From Octopus bimaculoides (Eukaryota): a DNA stretch of 64,000 nucleotides. The notes under the pieces were generated by a model. That model was not told the origin of the DNA, made no database searches, and saw nothing but the letters and a program-made list of their open reading frames with translations. The number at the start of each line of letters is the position of its first letter. The stretch's first letter is position 1. The translations under genes were made by a program, and so were the position numbers. Below, in pieces: positions 12,328 through 64,000 of the stretch. The DNA lies in assembly GCF_001194135.2 (NCBI RefSeq), contig NC_068984.1:87669820-87733819 (forward strand). The letters run 5' to 3'.

Positions 12328-13012
12328 TATCGTAGGAATGGTTTCCAGATAGGAATAAACTGTTTAATTAGTTACCATTGACACATGGAGTTCCTTAGGG
12401 TCCTTAGGCTAGTGTGATTGGACCATCATTTTTTAATCTTAGAAATGACTCTGAAAAACGTCTAAAAATATAAATATAAGCATTTATACTGATGATTTAA
12501 ATCAAAATTGAATTCGAAAAATGTTCCAGATGTAGCTTATTTAAAAGTAACTTTAGTTCGAACTTTGATTAGTTAATTGGTTTTCAGCTCTAAAATCATT
12601 TTCAAGCGACTATATCTGTCCCTCAGCTAAGTTTATGGAGTGTACAAGGAACGTAAGGGTTATTATTATTGATAGCATTCTTAAATATATGTACTAAATA
12701 CATTTCTCACATAGTTCATAAAGTATATAGTTGTATGTAACTGATAAATAAGATCCTCATGAAGAGAAATATTTAATTTCCTAGTCACGTCTATCGAACA
12801 TTAATTACATGGCTTTTATTTCCTTTAGTTCCGTATCAAGTGTCGCATAGGGCGTGGGCTTTAAGAGCTGCGACCCAGGGAAGACCTTCAGAGATTAAGT
12901 GAAAAGTTATTTATGAATGATGAATCAAAATATAAATATGCTCTCTTCAGAAAAAGTACGCTTTAAAAATTTTGGCAGTTTCATGAACGCCGGTACAATT
13001 TTGCAAGACTGA

Positions 13013-25211: not shown

Positions 25212-27850
25212 ATCATCATCATCATTATCATTGTCATCATTTAATGTCTGCTTTCCATACTCACATGGGCTGGATGGTTTGACTGAGAACTGGTAAACTG
25301 GGAGGCTGCACCAGGCCCCAGTCTGATCTGGCAAGGTTCCTACAGCTGGATGCCCTTCCTAGCACTACTTTGGGAGTGTGGTGGGTGCGTTTTATGTGCC
25401 ACTGGTATAGGTGCCAGTCAGACAGCACTGGCATCAGCCAAGCTTGAATGGTGCGTTTTACATGTTACCGGCATAGGTGCCACTGGTATTGGCATTGGCC
25501 ATGCTCAAATGTTGCTTTTTACATGACACCAGCACTGACATCGATTTCACTCAGTTCAACAGATCTTCACAAGCATGGCGTATCACCTGATGATTGGAGG
25601 GTGCTTTTAAACAGGCCAGTTATGCAACACTGGCATCGGCCATGATTACAATCCCACTTGGCTTGCCAGGTCTTCTCAAGCACAGCATATCTCCAAAGGC
25701 CTTGGTTGCTTGTTATTGCCTCTGTGAGCCCCAATGTTCAAAGGTTGTGCTTCACCACCTCATCTCATGTCTTTCTGGATCTACCTCTTCCACAGGTTCT
25801 CTCCACTGTTAGGGTGTGACACTTCTTCACACAGCTGTCCTCATCCATATGCATCACATGATCATACCAGTGCAGTCATCTGTCTTACACACCACATCTG
25901 ATGCTTCTTATGTCCGACTTTTCTCTCAAAGCGCTTATACTCTGTTGTGCATGCACACTGACATTACACACCCAGCGGAGCATACTAGCTTCATTTCTTT
26001 CAAATCTACACATGTCTTCAGCAGTTATAGGCCATGTTTCACAGCCATGTAGCATGAATGTTCACACACAGGCATCATACTGTCTAGCTTTCACTTTCAG
26101 TGAGAGGCCCTTTGTTACCAGTAGAGGTAGGAGCTCTCTGAACTTTGCCCAGCCTGTTCTTATTCTAGCAGCTATGGTCCCAGAGTATCCACCCCAACAA
26201 CTGATTTGGTCACCTAGATAATGGAAGCTATCTACTACCTCAAGCTTGCCATGACATGTGATAGAATCTGTTTTCTGTAAATTTTTGGTGTTTATTGCAC
26301 CTGTGCATCTTCTGCTCACAAAAACTATTTTCCCAGTTAGCCTTCCTTTGATATTACTGCACTTCTTATGTGTCCATAGCTTACACCAGGTATATCTTAT
26401 GGAGTTTCTACCTATGCCTTTTCTGCAAGGTACTGTCAATTTGGATAGCTGGTCCCTCTGTTGGGTTGACATTTGGCAGACTCTCTTTCTCCCATTCATT
26501 CTCTTTCTTTAGCAACCTTTCATAGTGGCATCTCCAAGTCTCTCTCTTTGTAGCATCATTAAAGGCAAGTGAGCCATCATCTATGTGGACACATTTCTCT
26601 CCTATGACATCGTGATTTTCTCTCTCTCACAATCTTGCAATTCAAAACATAAGTCTCTGGTCCTCATGATGCAGAACATTGGCAAATTTTTTCTTATCTA
26701 TTTCTCTTCTGGCTAAGTAAACCTGTCTCTTAGCTTCCCTTTTGGCTATCTAATACCCTGCTACCACCACACTTCCAATCCTTCCATTCCTGTTGCTTTT
26801 CCTTAATGGCCTTGTCAACTACACTGTTCCACCACCATGTCACCTTAGGTCGAGAGGGGACTTTGCACCAGCTACAAATCTGGTCAGTAGCCCTCAACAG
26901 GTTGTCCCACAGGAACCTCAAGTTGTCTTCCGCATTATGTGATGCTATATCCTCCTTGCTTTCGTCAAAAACTTCAAGTAATACATCTCTAAATCTTTGT
27001 TCATTCAGAGGATTCTTAAGTTGCCAGATCCTTCTTTTCCACACTGGTCGTCTTCTGGACAGCATTTAGCCCTGATCCTGAAGTCACTAACTACTAAACT
27101 ATGTTGTGGGTGCATACTTCACCAGGGAAAGTTTTGGCATTTATAAGTAACCATCTTTCTCATTTCCCAGTGAAACTGTAGTCAATTTGACTGGTGTACC
27201 CACTAGACTGGTAGATGAACAGATGACTGGCAAGTTTCCTGAAGTTATTACAGATCATAAGATCATTTGCATCACAGAATTCCAGTAGCCTGGTTCCTTC
27301 ATTATGGGAACCAAATCTGTGGCCACCATGCACACCATAGAAGCTCCCTGGATGTTGTCTAACATGCCTGCCACAAAGAAAAGGTCTCTGTCATTCGTTG
27401 ATGAGGTAGTCTGCAACATTGTGTCATAAAATCAGTTTTTCTGTTCATCAGGTTGTCCTGGCTGAAGGGCATAGGCTGAGATAATGGTTGCTTGCAGCAC
27501 TAGCCTAACCTTAAGTATTCTATCACAGACTCTGACTACCTCAATTACCTAATCAACCCATTTCTCAGCAAAGTGTATACTCCACCCCCACCCCATCACT
27601 GTTCCTTACCCAGAAAATCTTATACCTATGTTCTTTGCCTGCAAGGAACCTAGCAGAACTTCCTTTCCACCTTACCTCCTGGATGCAACACAAATCTACA
27701 CACTTCCATTCAAGCATCTCAACAATCTCACCAGACATACCTTTCAATGTGCCAACTCTGAGGGTGTGAAATGTGTGGGCTAGCAAGACCCTGGGATGGG
27801 GGACAGCAGCATTGTGCATCTCAAAAGAAAGCTTGCATGTGCATTAAGCA
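25212..27850 (-). mobile_element. Near full-length RTE-clade LINE (copy 1) with RT core deleted; 5' UTR possibly extends to ~28130
   Basis: APE N-terminus LRVGTLKGMSGEIVEMLEWKCVDLCCIQEVRWKG, linker TWWWNSVVDKAIKEK, C-terminal LEVVDSFHYLGD...WAKFRELLPLLVTKGLS, and a (TGA)n tail at 25212-25240. Confidence 0.92.
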
Positions 27851-39935: not shown

Positions 39936-40627
39936 TTAGTGCAATTATATATCAAAATATATTTGTATCATGGATAGTGTCAGATACAATTAAATGATTG
40001 ATTTGGATTTTAGACTAGCTATATGCTCAGAAGCTGAACATAACTTACACCCATGTCATATCTATTCTTTGCTCAAAACCTAGATAATACAAGAATGTAA
40101 GTTGCTTTTTATTAAGTGAACAACTAACACTCTCTCTTCATTCTCTTCCTTGTCTCTTCAGGAGAATAAATTTCGAATTAATGCTAGTAACATTTTTTTT
40201 TTCTCATTAAGATTATAATTTGCATGAATTAAAAAAAGTACTTTTGGCTCATCATCTCATGTAAAGTAAACTGCATTTCACTGCTGAACAGGTAAGATTT
40301 CCAATTAGTGGCACACTACACATTACAGTGGTACAGTGTCATTCATTGGTTACAGTTGGTAAATTTTTATGTATTTATTTAGGGTATGAAATATAACCAG
40401 GATGCTGATATCATTGTTTAATGTTATTATTGGTTAGTTTTACTACTTAGAGCCACTATTCTCACTTTGATATAAATTTATGCCCACTTTTTAATTATTT
40501 CAATTTTTCCAATAGGGCACATTTTTGAACAAGAAACAAAACTCCATTGACACTAGGCACCCATACATGTATGGTTACAGTCACATAGATGTGTACAAGA
40601 TGCAAAGACACGTGCACACACATACAT

Positions 40628-43410
40628 ATCATCATCATCATTTAACGTCAATTGTCCATGCTGGCATGGGTTGGACAGTTTGACTGGGCTACCATGCTGG
40701 AAGGCTGCACCAGACTCCAGTCTGATTTGGCATGGTTTTATATGGCTGGATACCCTTCCTAACGCCAACCTCTCCAAGAGTGTAATGGGTACTTTTATGC
40801 ACCACCAGCACGGGTGCCATTTGTGTGACACCACGATGCATATAAATGCCATTGGCATGGGTGCCAATTTTTGTGACACTGGTATCTGCCATGACTGCAA
40901 TTTTGCTTGGCTTGATGGGTCTTCTACTCAAGTAGAACGTAATGCCAAAGGTGTTGGTCATTGTCTCCATGAGGCCCAACACTCAAGAGGAACTCAGCCA
41001 CTTTGCCTCTGTGAGGCCTAATGTTCAAAAGATGTTTCTTATGAGGCTCAATGCTCGAAAGGAACTCTGTGAGGCCCAACATTCAAAAGATGTTCTTTAC
41101 ATGCCACCAGTATGGGTGCACTTGGCTTGACGGGTCCTCCCAAGCACAGCACATCGCCAAAGGTTTCGGTCACCAGTCAATGCCTCTGTGAGGCTCAAAG
41201 TTTGAAGATCATGCTTCACCACCTCATCCCATGTCTTCCTGCATCTACCTCTGCCACAAGTTCCCTACTCAGAGATTGGCATTTCTTCACACAGCTGTCC
41301 TCATCCACACGCATCACATGACCGTACCAGCACAGTCATCTCTCTTGCACGCCACATCTGATTCTTCTTATGCCTAACGTTTCTCTCAAGATGCTTGCAC
41401 TCTGTTGGACATATACACTGACAATGCACATCCAGCAAAGCATACTGGCTTCATTTCTTTCAAGCCTATTCATGTCCTCGACTGTCATAGCCCATGTTTC
41501 ACTGCCATGCAACATAGCTGTTTGCACACAAGCATCATACAATGTACCCTTCATTCTGAGAGAGAGGCCCTTTGTTACCAGCAGGGGTAGGAGCTCTCTG
41601 AACTTTTCCCAGCCTAATCTTATTCTCACAGCTACACTCTCGGAGCATCCACCTCCTCTACTAACTTTGTCACCTAGATAATGGAAGCTATCTACTACCC
41701 CTAGCTTGCTGCCCTGACAGTTGATGGAGTCTATTTTCTGCATATTTTCAGTGTTTATTGTACCTGTGCACCTTCCACATATAAAAGTTAATTTCCTTGG
41801 TAACCTTCCTCTGATGATACTGCACTTTTTATGTGTCTAAAGTTTACACTGGTTATATTTTATGGAGTTTCTACCTACAACTTTTCTACAGCTTGGGGAG
41901 GGCCATTTACCTGAAGGGATTTGTGATTTGTCTGCCTTCCTACTTACTATGACTTTGGTTTTTGCTAGGTTAACTCTAAGGCCTTTTGATTCTAGACCTT
42001 ACTTCCATACCTGAAACTTCTTCTCTAGTTCAGGTTGTGATTCAGCTATAAGAGCAAGGTCATCAGCATAGAGGAGCTCCCAGGGGCAGCCTGTCTTGAA
42101 TTCCTGTTATTGTTTGGGGAACTATGATGAACAAGAGGGGGCTGAGCACCAATCCTTGATGAAGCCCTACTTTGACCCTGAATTCTTTGCTGTACTCGTC
42201 CACCCTCACCTTACTTGTAGTGTCTCTGCACAAGGCTTGTACAGCTCTCACCAACCACTTGTCTATCCCTAGTTTCTGCATTGACCACCAGATAAGGGAT
42301 TGGGGGACTCTGTCAAATGCTTTCTCCAAGTCAACAAAAGCCAAGTACAGAGATTTATCTTTGGCTATGTATTTCTCCTGCAGTTGCCTTACCAGAAATA
42401 TAGCATCGGTGGTGCTTCTACCTGGCACAAAACCAAACTGTATCTCATCTAGACTAACTTTCTCCCTAATTAGTTAGGTTATGACTCTCTCTGCAACCTT
42501 CATCACCTGATCCAACAATTTGATACCTCTGTAATTATTTCTATCTAAGGCAACACCTTTACCTATGTAGCAGTTGACTATAGTGCTGCTACACCAGTCA
42601 TTGGGTATGAATCTTTCATGAACCACCTGATTTACAATACGGGTGACTAGACCATCTCAGCGGTGATTCCTGATGGCCTGGGGGCTTTCCCTGTCTTCAT
42701 ATCCATAATTGCTTTATCTACCAGGGTACTGTCGTTTCAGGTAGATGGTCCCTCAATTAGATCAACATCTTTTCATTCATTCTCCATGTTCAGCAGTCTT
42801 TCATAATGGCATCTCCAAGCCTCTTTCTTTAAAGACTCATTAAAAGCAAGTGCACCATCATCCATGCACTTCCTATGACATCACAATTTTCTCTCACACA
42901 CTGTCCTGCAATCCAAAATATTTCAGTTCTTTGGTCCTCACGATGCTGAATATAGGCAAACTTATTCTTTTCTGCCTCCCCCTTGGCTAGATACACATGT
43001 CTCCTAGCTTCCCTTCTGGCTATCTGATACAATTCCCTGCTACCTCACTCCTCTAGGCCTTCTCAGGCCTTTTTATTTGCTCTAATGGCCCTGTCTACAG
43101 TATTGTTCTACCACCACGTTACCCTAGGTCTGGAAGGGACTTTGTACCAGCCACAGATTTGGACTGTGACACTCAGCAAGCTGTCCCACAGGAATTCCCA
43201 ATAGCCCTCTATGTCACAAGTTTGTAGCTCCTCCTCCCTCTCATCAAATTTCTCAATTAGGATGTCCCTAAATCTCTGACCTAAATCTTTTCCAGATTGG
43301 TCTGCTTCTTGGCATCCTTCTAGCCTGGAGTCTAAAATTGCTAATGACTAGTCTATGCTGGGTGGTATATTCTTCAGCAGGGAGGGTTTTTGTATTTAAG
43401 AGCAATCATG
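40628..43410 (-). mobile_element. RTE-clade LINE copy 2, 5'-truncated, RT region complete but degenerate
   Basis: PGRSTTDAIFLVRQLQEKY...YLAFVDLEKAFDRVP...GLHQGLVLSPLLF, then ELLYADDL (~42055-42075) and VVDSFHYLGD...TAMLHGSETWA; (TGA)n tail at 40628. Confidence 0.93.
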
Positions 43411-46459: not shown

Positions 46460-46468
46460 TATACTTAT

Positions 46469-47635
46469 ATCATCATCATTGTTTAACGTCCGTTTTTCAT
46501 GCTGGCATGGGTTGGACGGTTCGACTGGGGTCTGGGAAGCTAAGAGGCTGCACCAGGCTCCAGTCTGATCTGGCAGTCTTTCTACAGCTGGATGCCCTTC
46601 CTAACGCCAACCACTCCAAGAGTGTAGTGGGTGCTTTTCACGTGCCAGAGGGGGCTGGCAATGACCACGATCGGTTGGTGCTTTTTATGTGCCACCGGCA
46701 TGGAAGCCAGCGCTGGCATCGGCTATGTTTGGATGGTGCTTTTTACATGCCACCGGCACAGGGATCACAACTACAATTTCCATTTGATTTTGGTTTTGAT
46801 GTACTTGACTCAATAGGTCTCCTCAAGCACAGTATGTCACCCTACAATCCAAGGTACTTTTGAGTGGGCTGGTTATGTGACACTGGTGTTGGTTACAGCT
46901 GTGAACTCACTTTATTTTCTGGGTCTTCTCAATCACAGCATCTCTCCAGAAGTCTCTGTCTTTCGTCATTGCCTCTGTGAGGCCCAACGTTCGAAGGTCA
47001 TGCCTGACCATCTCATCCCATGTCTTCCTGGGTCTCCCTCTACCCCGGATTCCTTCCACTGTTTGGGAGTGGCACTTCTTCACACAGATCTCCTCATCCA
47101 TCCGTAGTACATGACCATACTAGCTCAAACGTCTCTCTTGCATGCCACATCCGATGCTTCTTATGTCCAACATTTCTCTCAGGGCGCTTACAATCTGTTG
47201 TGTGTACACACTGACATTACACATCCAGCAGATCTTGCTAGCTTCATTTCTTTTGAGCCTACTCATGTCTTCAACAGTCACAGCCCATGTTTCACTGGCG
47301 TGAAGCATGGCAGTTCACACACAAGCATCGTACAATCTACCTTTCACTCTGAGCAAGAGGCCTTTTGTCACCAGTAGGGGTAGGAGCTTTCTGAACTGTG
47401 CCCAGGCTATTCTCATTGTAGTGGTAACACTCTCTGAGCATCCACCCCTACTACAGACTTGGTGGAAGCTATCAGCTACTTCTAGTTTCTGGCATGTGAT
47501 GGAATCTGTTTCCTGAGCATCTGTGGTGTTTATTGCCCCTGTGCATCTGCTGCACATGAAAGCTATCTTCCCGGTTAATTTTCCTTTGATGTTGCTGCAC
47601 CTCTTATGTGTCCATAGCTTACACTGGGTTACATC
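46469..47635 (-). mobile_element. RTE-clade LINE copy 3, 5'-truncated
   Basis: TQCKLWTHKRCSNIKGKLTGKIAFMCSRCTG...WAQFRKLLPLLVTKGL...VEGIRGRGRPRKTWDEMVRHDL; (TGA)n tail at 46469. Confidence 0.9.
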
Positions 47636-54190: not shown

Positions 54191-54464
54191 TATATACATG
54201 GATCAAAACAGTTTCATTCAGATTCTGGTAGAAACTTGAATAGATATGGAAGGGGGATCCCCTTCTGTCTCTGCCTCTACCTCTCTCCCTCCCTCCCTCC
54301 ATTGTCAATGGAACCTCACCCCCCAAAAAAACAACATTCTCTTATTCTAAACAAAACCTCCCCAAAAATATCTTTTTGTACATTCACACGTGTGTGTGTA
54401 TTGGGTTATCAGATAAATTCATTAATTTCTTTCCAATGTTATTTGACTTAATCATCTTCATTTT

Positions 54465-54690
54465 CATCATCATCGTTTAACGCCTGCTTTCCATGCTGGC
54501 ATAGGTTGGACAGTTTGACTGAGGACTGGCAAGCCAGGTGTCTGCACCAGGCTCCAATCTGATCTGGCAAGGTTTCTAATGCCAACCACTCCAAGAATGT
54601 AGTGGGTGCTTTTTACGAGCCACTGGCTTGAGGGCCAATCGGGTGGCACTGGCATCGATCATGGTCGAATGGTGCTTTTTACATGCCACA
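54465..54690 (-). mobile_element. RTE 3' UTR/tail fragment
   Basis: catcatcatcgtttaacgcctgctttccatgctggc...gtgctttttacatgccac. Confidence 0.8.
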
Positions 54691-58857: not shown

Positions 58858-61391
58858 GTTGCTGTAGTAATGCCTATCGGTGTAAACGTAAAAAATATCC
58901 CAGGGAAAATAATATCAATTTTTCCGACTGCGTCACTTTATATTAATTTATGGTTTGTTATAGATACCAACTTCAACATATATCTTAGGAAATGTAATCT
59001 TAAGAATTTATGTAATCACTAGACTATTAGATATTTATCTATACAAAAGTGTCTCCCAAATAGAAACGTTTGACTTTTTGGTCAAGTTTTCGCTGCTAAC
59101 TTAAGCCAAAATCCAAATGTTTTTGTCAAGCTATACCAGAACATATACGCACAAACACACATACATACATACATACATATTTCGTTTACAAAAATCCAGT
59201 GGCTATATGCTAGGGTCTACAACTGCTAGAGATGCCAATGTAATCCATAATTTCTTTGTGTATAACCTGAGGATTTATGCTAAAAGTGTTGACAATGCAA
59301 ACAAATTTAAAAAATAAAAAAACAGGGTAAATAACAACTGTTTCAAGTGACATAGGACTAGAATTTGGCCAAAAGTAGTCAAATTGCTGAACGTGGACAA
59401 TCAGTCACCCAAACCCAAAACATGTACATCGATCTCTTTCCTGTTCCACACAAAGAACACTACAAATAACTAGGTATTGATGAAAATATACAACATTCGA
59501 AAAATACTATAAATAACTAGGTATTGATGAAATTATGTCATAGGAAGGTGCTGTGAACAAAGAGTGATCCTGGAATATTACTCGAGAATTAGAAAAACAA
59601 AATAAGGACAGCCTTACAATACGACAATATCCCTCAATGTATTTGAAGTACCAGTGCTAATACCAATATTTGGGGTGCTTGAGTGAGGGGTGGGGTGAGG
59701 GGAGCGTGTCCCACTGAAGAAAAGAAGTACACCCTTCTAAATAATGTTACTACGCCCTTTTCTCCTGGAATTGTATTCCCTTCGAAAAATTCCTGGGACC
59801 GGCCCTGTGAGTGGTCTTTAGAGGAAATCCATTCCATAGACATTAAACCCCGAAAGATCCTGACATCAACAGAAAACATTCACAGAAACAATGATTTCTG
59901 TAGGCTCTACATAAGAGATGAAAGAGTTAGAGGTTTGATATTAGTACAGACAAATTCCGTATGTCATATAGTATCACTCAGATAGCATCTGCTAAACAAC
60001 TGTAAATATATAAACCTAATGCTGATATACAAAGAGAATACCATCCCACAAGTCGGCAGTGAGCTCTACCAAAACAACTGGACTAGCATACCTCAGAGAA
60101 AACCTAGATGTGAAACACTCAACCTACCAAAAAAAAAAAAAATGAAAAAATATGTATGAGTATGTTTCCCGAAGACTTGAACATGACACTAATACTGACA
60201 TGACTGGTGTAATTAATAGGGAAGCAAGGAGAGCGACCGCTCCACGACGAGTACATTTTAAAAAATTGGTGCCTTTTATAAAAAAAAAATTATCAACGAG
60301 TTAAAAATCATTTGGCATGTGTCATGGCTTCTTTTTTTATGCGCTCGCTCCACCTAACTTTAGAACCTAACTACGCCCCCCCACCACCGGAGCGGAGACT
60401 GCTACGTCACATTTCGAAGACTATACGTTTACGATCCAATAGGAGGAAACTGCTAAAAGTATTTAACGAACAAAAGGGACAGTGAAGTCTTTGGAGCCCG
60501 AAGATGCAACCGAAAACGTCGATTTGTCATATTTTTGTAGACATAACACGTTAGGGGTAGCAGCTCACAAATGTCATCAAGGTATTCTCATTCAATGCGA
60601 CATGACGAAAATGACTGTCCTGAGATGAATATAGAGAATCCCCCGAGTTATTGAGTACATGCATAAACATCAACACAAGGAATGTTGGCGGAACATTCCA
60701 ATCAAAAATTCTACAAAGTGCAAATAAAAGAGGTCGAATGTCGTTGTTTGGAACAAGCAAGGAAAGTAACCTGCCGGCAAAGAGATCAGCTACCCATCTG
60801 ATGCGATAACAACTATCCCATTTATACCAATATAGTTGGTGCTCTTGGTTTTGTTAGAAAATGCCTAAGAGACAGTTAGAAAAAGTTAGGGTTTTCAAAG
60901 AAAAAAAAAGTGAAACAACCAACGCGCACATTTACAAATACAATCTGTAAGCGTAACAGTAAAAATATGCAAAACTTTTCACAAGTTCAACATATAACAA
61001 TGATTTTGTTATCTTCATTCCAACGATGGAGCTTTGTATCTTTTGTCAGAGACCAACTTCTTCCCGATAGGAAGACTTCAAATAATTAAAAATAGAAGAG
61101 TGCATGCATCCATTCATGTATGCATGTAGCCAGCTCTTATACTCAGGCTAAAGATTTTCTTTTGTACCTATTATCACTGTATAACAAAATCTTATACTAA
61201 TTCTGCTTGTCATTCCGTTACTTGGCTCGTTGGTAACGCTTTCACGTGATTAGAGAAGGAAAGGGAGAACGAACAGAGGGAGACATAAAAAGACGGAGAG
61301 TGAAGCGTCCATGACGTGAGGGAGAGGGAAAGTAATTGTATTGAGTAATCATGGATAAATTACTTCATTAATTTATGATGATGATGATGAT

Positions 61392-61591
61392 TGTTATAAA
61401 CCCAAACTCGAATATCAAAATTTAAAAGGTTTTAATCGACTAAAAATACAGCAATATACAATACAAAGATTGCTAAATTGTAAGCAAAACCAAACTTCAA
61501 CGCAATAACATTTTTATGCAGCGAGTTACTACATTCTCGACTAACTGAAACCAACACTGAACACGTCATTCCGCAGACAGAACAGATGATA

Positions 61592-61626
<35 letters not shown>

Positions 61627-61647
61627 AATGATGATAAAGTATTCACA
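61392..61647 (-). repeat. 3' LTR (probably 256 bp, TG...CA) with an (ATC)n tract
   Basis: The CA end is fixed by the match to 63983. The TG start at 61647 (tgtgaatac) is inferred; 61533 is an alternative start. Contains an Inr-like TCAGTT (61548-61543) and ATTAAA. Confidence 0.6.
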
Positions 61648-61719
61648 TTGAGTGTCAATAGCGTTCTTTAATTTTGAACCATTTCTGAATTCTGTCACCT
61701 CTTTGTCAATGCAGGGATA

Positions 61720-63945: not shown

Positions 63946-64000
63946 TCTCTCTCTCTCTCTAGCTATAATTAGTCGATTGAATTGTTATAAACCCAAACTC

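Follow-up and report, generated by a model that had tools for sequence, protein, structure and literature searches.

Self-priming of reverse transcription has been described for Tf1 and Tf2, where the mechanism is known (PMC5341516, PMC4600332), and for the Tf1/sushi chromoviruses in general (PMC6317226, PMC6934838), a group that includes Tf1, Tf2 and Tj1 of Schizosaccharomyces, Maggy, Skippy, Cft-1, Boty, Grasshopper and sushi-ichi, together with Tcn1 in non-seed plants (PMC4600332, PMC5341516, PMC6934838, PMC6317226). For the plant Tcn1 elements self-priming has been predicted (PMC6317226, PMC6934838), as it has for the plant Ty1/copia TAR elements Houba and Osr-1, in the latter case from a complementarity of at least 10 bp between the LTR and a primer binding site (PBS) beginning 0-5 nt after the LTR (PMC6317226). 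PBSs for tRNA-Ser, Leu or Arg were reported for the Mag elements of Culex (PMC3286476), and PBSs for tRNA-Ser and tRNA-Met for two Mag-related elements of locusts (PMC3391268); PMC2774666 is silent on PBSs. The LTRs of Mag A and Mag C start with TGT..., end in ...AYAACA and have a clear AATAAA and no conserved TATA (PMC3601003). In the open-access literature we found no description of self-priming linked to Mag or to any other non-chromoviral animal gypsy lineage.

The DNA analysed here is a 64-kb stretch (64,000 nucleotides) from Octopus bimaculoides, referred to as the window, with a gypsy-type element on the minus strand at its right edge. The element is a dead, non-chromoviral, Mag-like copy, and we consider it likely that minus-strand DNA synthesis in its lineage is primed in the manner of Tf1, by a piece of the element's RNA in place of a tRNA. 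The object of interest is not this dead copy; it is the self-complementary PBS, which co-varies with its own LTR across the whole lineage.

The element at the edge of the window

The features of the element are collected in Table 1, and all element coordinates in the text refer to the minus strand. The 18-mer that closes the 5' LTR also closes the 3' LTR copy, without a difference, at 61409-61392, which makes two matches in the window where 0.11 would be expected, and its ATAACA terminus agrees with the AYAACA LTR ends of the relatives described below. The order of sequences 3' of the 5' LTR is A, TTCAATCGACTAA, TT, ATAGCT, (AG)n and a mutated gag start. The (AG)n microsatellite has expanded within the short leader, at 63960-63946, ahead of the gag start codon, which is now ACG (63945-63943). 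The coding region carries frameshifts and one in-frame stop and has lost its YxDD box; it breaks off in RNase H at ~61696, the remnant corresponding to residues 2-756 of the 1191-aa relative P0001, and integrase is therefore missing.

Table 1. Features of the gypsy-type element in the window
Feature	Position	Strand	Remarks
5' LTR, last 18 nt (U5 end, ...TTTATAACA): GAGTTTGGGTTTATAACA	64000-63983	-	remainder beyond the window edge
Spacer A between LTR-terminal CA and PBS	63982	-	1 nt; same in most aligned families
PBS TTCAATCGACTAA	63981-63969	-	complementary to LTR arm TTAGTCGATTAAA; same register (+2 after LTR) as in relatives
Leader remnant, PBS to gag	63968-63946	-	includes (AG)n microsatellite; 0-30 nt here in relatives
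Degenerate gag-protease-RT-partial RNase H	63945-61696	-	from six-frame translation, Pfam scan and tblastn of P0001
3' LTR copy, TGTTCTG...TATAACA, 193 nt	61584-61392	-	5' boundary putative, assuming a TG start
Upstream word AGTTAGTCGAGAAT at Inr-like TCAGTT	61546-61533	-	marginal complement of PBS
Candidate self-primer arm TTAGTCGATTAAA	61443-61431	-	ends in ATTAAA (poly(A)-signal-like hexamer), then ACC
Possible small hairpin ACCU...GGGU	61430-61400	-	directly 3' of arm; suggestive only

The 3' LTR copy is bordered on both sides by (ATC)n, at 61585-61650 and 61375-61391, and the polypurine tract is absent upstream of it; because of this, and because the other LTR lies outside the window, the 5' boundary of the LTR cannot be confirmed. 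An internal deletion, or a solo LTR adjoining a truncated element, could explain both the (ATC)n-flanked 3' LTR and the stop within RNase H. With its coding region wrecked and both integrase and polypurine tract missing, the window copy is a dead, 3'-truncated fossil that cannot be active and that has kept the priming signature with one mismatch. No other copies were found within the 64-kb window by tblastn with P0001, and the LTR-end and PBS words are unique to the element. The surroundings are AT-rich eukaryotic DNA with many microsatellites and SINE-like repeats of several families, one of which consists of (ATC)n followed by GTTTAACGTC..TTTCCATGCTGGCATGGGTTGGAC (e.g. 25225-25361, 40626-40688, 46467-46603 and 54461-54597).

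The sequence that follows the 5' LTR, ATTCAATCGACTAATT at 63982-63967, can pair with either of two words of the 3' LTR copy. The first-pass annotation had claimed that there is no tRNA-type PBS here, and this was borne out: the LTR ends at 63983 with the sequence given, the junction reads ACA followed by ATTCAATCG, and the TGG of a tRNA-type PBS is absent. One of the two words, TTAGTCGATT (61443-61434), which the same annotation had named as a second partner for the site, is an exact 10-nt complement of 63978-63969; together with the AAA that comes next, it makes 12 of 13 pairs with the PBS and reaches +2 after the LTR. The single mismatch is at PBS position 3, where TTC stands in place of the expected TTT, as would fit an old copy. 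Comparison with shuffled LTRs and with random 20-mers of the window gave P ~0.006 for finding, within the 20 nt that follow the LTR, a 10-nt stretch exactly complementary to the element's own LTR. The arm lies ~40 nt before the LTR end, and in a composite leader made of the 3' LTR tail and the post-LTR sequence the arm:PBS duplex is part of the minimum-energy fold (z = -2.8). Measured by the same yardstick as the copia TAR elements (at least 10 bp, from 0-5 nt after the LTR; PMC6317226), the complementarity is 10 nt exact from +5, or 12 of 13 from +2, in the window copy, and 10-19 nt exact from +2 in relatives. Judged by its position, its register and its ...ATTAAA-ACC context, all of which are as in the relatives, the word at 61443-61431 is the conserved partner of the PBS. 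It is read here from the 3' LTR copy; the functional arm would be its equivalent in the 5' LTR, outside the window.

Relatives and the covariation of arm and PBS

With the conceptual gag-pol translation of the window element as the query, 549 homologues were found, the best of them at 56-58% identity and a broad group at ~40-47%. Loci were taken from the contigs of homologues and from 80 metagenome-contig loci, the latter reached through an alignment of 15 proteins, and LTR pairs were delimited by blastn. The relatives show 39-76% protein identity to P0001. The named hosts are Pieris brassicae (L086), Ischnura elegans (L088) and the sea cucumber Apostichopus japonicus (L087), and many of the other relatives come from metagenome-derived contigs. 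When contig ends were examined for signs of the transcription start, the Logan contigs L089-L091 proved to be collapsed into circles or interrupted within the LTR and so gave no pointer to an RNA 5' end.

About 35 families share a single layout. The LTR contains an arm of 11-26 nt, the 3' end of which reads A(A/T)TAAA and is followed by RCC(T), and the distance from the arm to the terminal CA of the LTR is 29-86 nt, with a median of ~41. Next comes a spacer, usually of one nt and nearly always A among the 35 aligned families (T in L028 and L068, 4 nt in L054), and after the spacer the exact complement of the arm, with the gag ATG 13-47 nt after the LTR. The hexamer at the 3' end of the arm is AATAAA in 11 families and ATTAAA in 12, i.e. 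in 23 of 35 together. Neither a TGG in the first post-LTR positions nor any tRNA-type site was found among the ~35 families. The intact L001 has LTRs of the form TGTCG...CGACA, a target-site duplication ATTAA and the polypurine tract agagaggatgag; its LTR and gag ATG are separated by only 17 nt, A TTTATTTAACTTAAT A, and this stretch is matched by an exact complement, ATTAAGTTAAATAAA, that lies within the LTR ~40 nt short of the LTR end. In several families the whole stretch of 13-20 nt between the LTR and the gag ATG is the complement of the arm, so that no space is left for another PBS. Further pairs of arm and PBS are TGATTCTAAGCTGTTAAAA and TTTTAACAGCTTAGAATCA in L008, TGATTCAGTGGAATAAA and TTTATTCCACTGAATCA in L005, GTTTACGCGTAATAAA and TTTATTACGCGTAAAC in L017, TTTCTAGTCGAATAAA and TTTATTCGACTAGAAA in L019, and AGTTATAGTAAATTAAA and TTTAATTTACTATAACT in L048. 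The arm and its complement are likewise present in the sea cucumber copy. The Pieris brassicae copy has LTRs that are 100% identical, a target-site duplication GTGCG and an intact ORF of 1214 aa, and the LTRs of the Ischnura elegans copy are 100% identical over the aligned 132 nt; from their sequences, these two copies, which both bear the feature, look recently active.

Several other observations were made on the loci of the relatives. Their polypurine tract is conserved, ends in GGGGTGAA or a near variant, and abuts the LTR start TGT (L001 7606-7621, L086 6645-6655). In L030 (5094-5456 / 12330-12696), a member with a self-complementary PBS is nested inside another LTR pair, and the outer, unrelated element has an ordinary tRNA-type PBS, TGGTGGCAGCGTCGGGA. 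A block consisting of LTR end plus PBS is tandemly duplicated in L021 (133-246). In L088 the 5' and 3' LTRs are identical except for a 9-nt indel immediately ahead of the terminal ACA (2950-2975). Two metagenome contigs, L006 and L007, end 13 and 24 nt past the arm hexamer in the 3' LTR, which is the distance expected of a poly(A) site; these ends could be those of read-through transcripts or a coincidence.

The complementarity is specific to each family. The exact match of a PBS to the LTR of its own family is 10-19 nt long (median 14), as against mostly 5-7 nt with the LTRs of other families, and the few longer cross-matches are between sister families. We aligned 30 families with ungapped arms on two anchors, the LTR end and ...TAAA-RCC, both of which are independent of the complementarity, and in this alignment, the register of which was read from the complementarity itself, 93.8% of the cells are paired, against 65.7% after shuffling, with none of 500 shuffles reaching the observed value. 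Both sides are altered by compensatory changes at 14 of the 16 pairs, and when the partner is slid by 1-3 columns, pairing falls to 29-47%. RNAalifold, with no structure supplied, returned the same helix, with 13 bp and 11 compensatory pairs; the arm:PBS duplex is in the minimum-energy fold of all 35 sequences, and a covariance model built from the motif matched ~58 loci. Near-identical families within one genome are also set apart by a compensatory pair: the arm and PBS of L015 are GTTGATTAAA and TTTAATCAAC, whereas L013 combines GTTTATTAAA, found in both of its LTRs, with a PBS reading TTTAATAAAC. On this comparative evidence we take the arm:PBS pairing to be real, and the conservation of complementarity among relatives, on which the first-pass annotation had made its proposal depend, is found throughout the families.

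Two further traits of the arm region were seen. A stem of at least 4 bp starts right after the arm in 27 of 35 families, as against a mean of 16.3 and a maximum of 23 with shuffled loops; a hairpin in this place recalls the U5-IR-like stem of Tf1 and is suggestive only. Within the arm, 10 nt before its 3' end, there is a nearly invariant A-G(-T) (alignment A2 columns 6-8; 61441-61439 in the window), its G forming a G:C pair in 27 of 30 families; it is initiator-like, yet the pairing with the PBS extends 5' of it.

Proposed self-priming and its alternatives

Since the PBS is self-complementary, since there is no tRNA-type PBS, and since the complementarity has been kept by compensatory change, self-priming is the best reading of these families. 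The first-pass annotation had proposed self-priming with the upstream word at 61546 as the primer; self-priming remains the best reading, with a PBS that co-varies with its own LTR, and the candidate primer word is instead the one at 61443-61434 that it had put second. It can be hypothesized that the transcript starts in the 5' LTR, at or upstream of an arm of 13-20 nt ending in ...A(A/U)UAAA. The arm would fold back over a loop of ~30-90 nt onto the PBS, one nt past the LTR-terminal CA, a step for which the pairing is shown by covariation, and a small hairpin RCCU...AGGY often lies directly 3' of the arm, although this is suggestive only. By analogy with Tf1, the RNase H of the element would then cut ...UAAA^RCC after the last paired base and leave a 3'-OH. 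RT could extend this end across the spacer and U5 into what remains of R, with transfer of the product to the 3' R. During plus-strand strong-stop synthesis the primer would be copied back into the PBS in each cycle. A PBS that is rewritten from the arm in this manner would be expected to show perfect complementarity in young copies and joint change of arm and PBS, as in the double change of L013.

The primer 3' end would coincide with a poly(A)-signal-like hexamer, which makes it plausible that the pairing of arm and PBS also hides the 5' copy of the signal, while the 3' copy, having no PBS downstream, would stay exposed. The same placement counts against the model in one respect, in that a hexamer lying in R has to be suppressed in its 5' copy, and so does a duplex longer than the 11 bp of Tf1. 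A search of the relatives for a TATA-like motif at constant spacing from the arm gave no positional peak upstream of it, and the arm is accordingly placed only putatively in R or at the 5' end of the RNA.

Of the other explanations, the least improbable is that the helix is a conserved structure of the leader RNA that serves some other function, be it masking of the 5' poly(A) signal, packaging or dimerisation, or control of gag translation, and that priming is done by something else. Covariation proves pairing and not priming, and with arms that end in AATAAA or ATTAAA in 23 of 35 families an occlusion of the signal is plausible. However, the start of minus-strand DNA defines the LTR end, and hence the place where a PBS must sit; the paired segment is found exactly there, one nt past the LTR-terminal CA, defining the cDNA end. 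Moreover, the interval between the LTR and gag holds neither a TGG nor another conserved site, in several families it contains nothing besides the paired segment, and no alternative primer is in sight, so that we regard a helix with some other job as unlikely.

It is also rather improbable that the same arm acts as primer from another place, either from the RNA 3' end, with the arm in U3, or from a co-packaged second RNA, by pairing in trans or through 5'-3' cyclisation. Such an arrangement would agree with the lack of a conserved TATA that fixes the start of transcription, and a hexamer in U3 would need no suppression at the 5' end. On the other hand, R would be squeezed between the transcription start and a poly(A) site 10-30 nt past the hexamer, with almost no repeat left for strand transfer, and the families have conserved the geometry of a local hairpin, its loop 29-86 nt long, which a purely long-range contact would not need.

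The upstream word of the first-pass annotation makes a third candidate, in which the Inr-like A at 61546 would be the first transcribed base and the 14 nt beginning with it, AGUUAGUCGA-GAAU, would be the self-primer. The pairing is present as that annotation gave it: AGTTAGTCGAGAAT, the A of which lies inside the initiator-like TCAGTT, forms 10 bp with the PBS including one G-U, then a 2-nt bulge and 4 bp more. Taken alone, however, the site has P ~0.075 in the window copy, its pairing requires the bulge and the G-U, and the conserved partner of the PBS lies elsewhere; a search of the 21 relatives with a defined U3 for a U3-side complement to the PBS gave chance-level results in all of them. 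The word at 61546 is found in the window copy only, near chance and with no counterpart in those 21 relatives, and we reject it as the conserved primer partner. Probably it repeats TTAGTCGA by chance or in this copy alone and is not a primer, and a start of priming from it is very improbable.

Least credible is a tRNA, a tRNA fragment or another host small RNA as the primer, for although half-tRNA primers exist in some copia lineages (PMC6317226), the PBSs differ even within one genome (L008, L013/L015 and L019 of WLWD01), each matching its own LTR, a conserved host RNA cannot track such changes, and TGG is absent from the first positions of every PBS; a tRNA primer is accordingly rejected on the covariation and the absence of TGG. 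ARAGORN found no tRNA genes in the window and one doubtful match in 684 kb of the relatives' loci.

Self-priming by the downstream arm may have a wider reach than the families studied in detail. We see about even chances that a large, pan-metazoan clade of non-chromoviral Ty3/gypsy elements has abandoned tRNA priming and self-primes from its own R, independently of Tf1/sushi, with one sequence acting as the poly(A) signal in the 3' LTR and as the masked primer 3' end in the 5' leader. Members of the clade were seen in Lepidoptera, Odonata, a sea cucumber, the window host and many metagenome-derived contigs. If this is true, it would be a second, apparently independent and very widespread self-priming lineage, and the loss of the tRNA primer would be a recurrent event; the clade would also offer a natural comparison for the choice of cleavage site by RNase H, and would link priming to the control of the poly(A) site. 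LTR annotation pipelines look for a tRNA-complementary PBS, some of them as a filter, and would score elements of this clade as PBS-less. The motif ...TAAA-RCC, 30-90 nt, CA-A-TTTA plus complement, or the covariance model, could be used to recover such elements, and with the intact-looking copies of Pieris brassicae and Ischnura elegans the mechanism is open to direct test.

Clade membership and comparison with known systems

The relatives have single gag-pol ORFs of 1191-1228 aa, which run from the gag N-terminus to integrase in the gypsy domain order PR-RT-RH-IN. The double CCHC knuckles that the first-pass annotation had pointed out are indeed there: two are present in the window remnant, CTFCGSNDFHLRFKC with irregular spacing and CYKCGYFGHFAKEC, and two are invariant across the 15 proteins of relatives (C226/C229/H234/C239 and C246/C249/H254/C259). 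Pfam scans of P0001, P0111 and P0059 detected PR, RT, RNase H and integrase and no chromodomain, nor was one found in the Pfam lists of the homologues; with no chromodomain and the gypsy domain order, the lineage probably does not belong to Tf1/sushi. The LTR features of the Mag A/Mag C type are also seen, with TGTTCTG...TATAACA in the window, ACAACA or ATAACA at the ends of many relatives, and no TATA peak; as judged from sequence, this match to Mag A/C is a resemblance and is not diagnostic. The term Mag-like would suit elements with such LTR termini, with gag and pol in one ORF and with two invariant CCHC knuckles. Since the Mag elements of Culex were reported as tRNA-primed (PMC3286476), the present lineage is to be taken as a distinct sub-lineage, or as not being Mag in the strict sense; a tRNA-Ser, Leu or Arg PBS of the Culex Mag type was found in none of the ~35 families examined.

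The comparison with known systems can be put as follows. To Mag (Bombyx mori Mag and the A and C clades, including SURL) the lineage is similar in its gag-pol ORF of ~1200 aa, its PR-RT-RH-IN order and its two CCHC knuckles, as well as in its short LTRs of 130-300 nt, often with an AYAACA end, a conspicuous AATAAA and no conserved TATA, and in its wide occurrence in metazoans; it differs in that tRNA PBSs are reported for the Mag elements of Culex and the two Mag-related locust elements, and none of the families here has one. With the copia TAR elements it has in common that self-priming is predicted purely from the complementarity of LTR and PBS, whereas those elements belong to another superfamily, with the copia domain order, and are found in plants. 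Compared with Tf1/sushi, the lineage is without a chromodomain and its named hosts are invertebrate animals. The primer of Tf1 is the RNA 5' end, which for the present lineage we infer, and the duplex, of 11 bp in Tf1, is 13-20 bp here; the primer 3' end of the present lineage is a conserved ...A(A/T)TAAA followed by RCC, and its PBS is set off from the LTR by a spacer of one nt. What the two have in common is the absence of a tRNA PBS, possibly a stem-loop next to the primer duplex, comparable to the U5-IR-like structure of Tf1, and a PBS beside the 5' LTR that can pair with part of the LTR of the same element.
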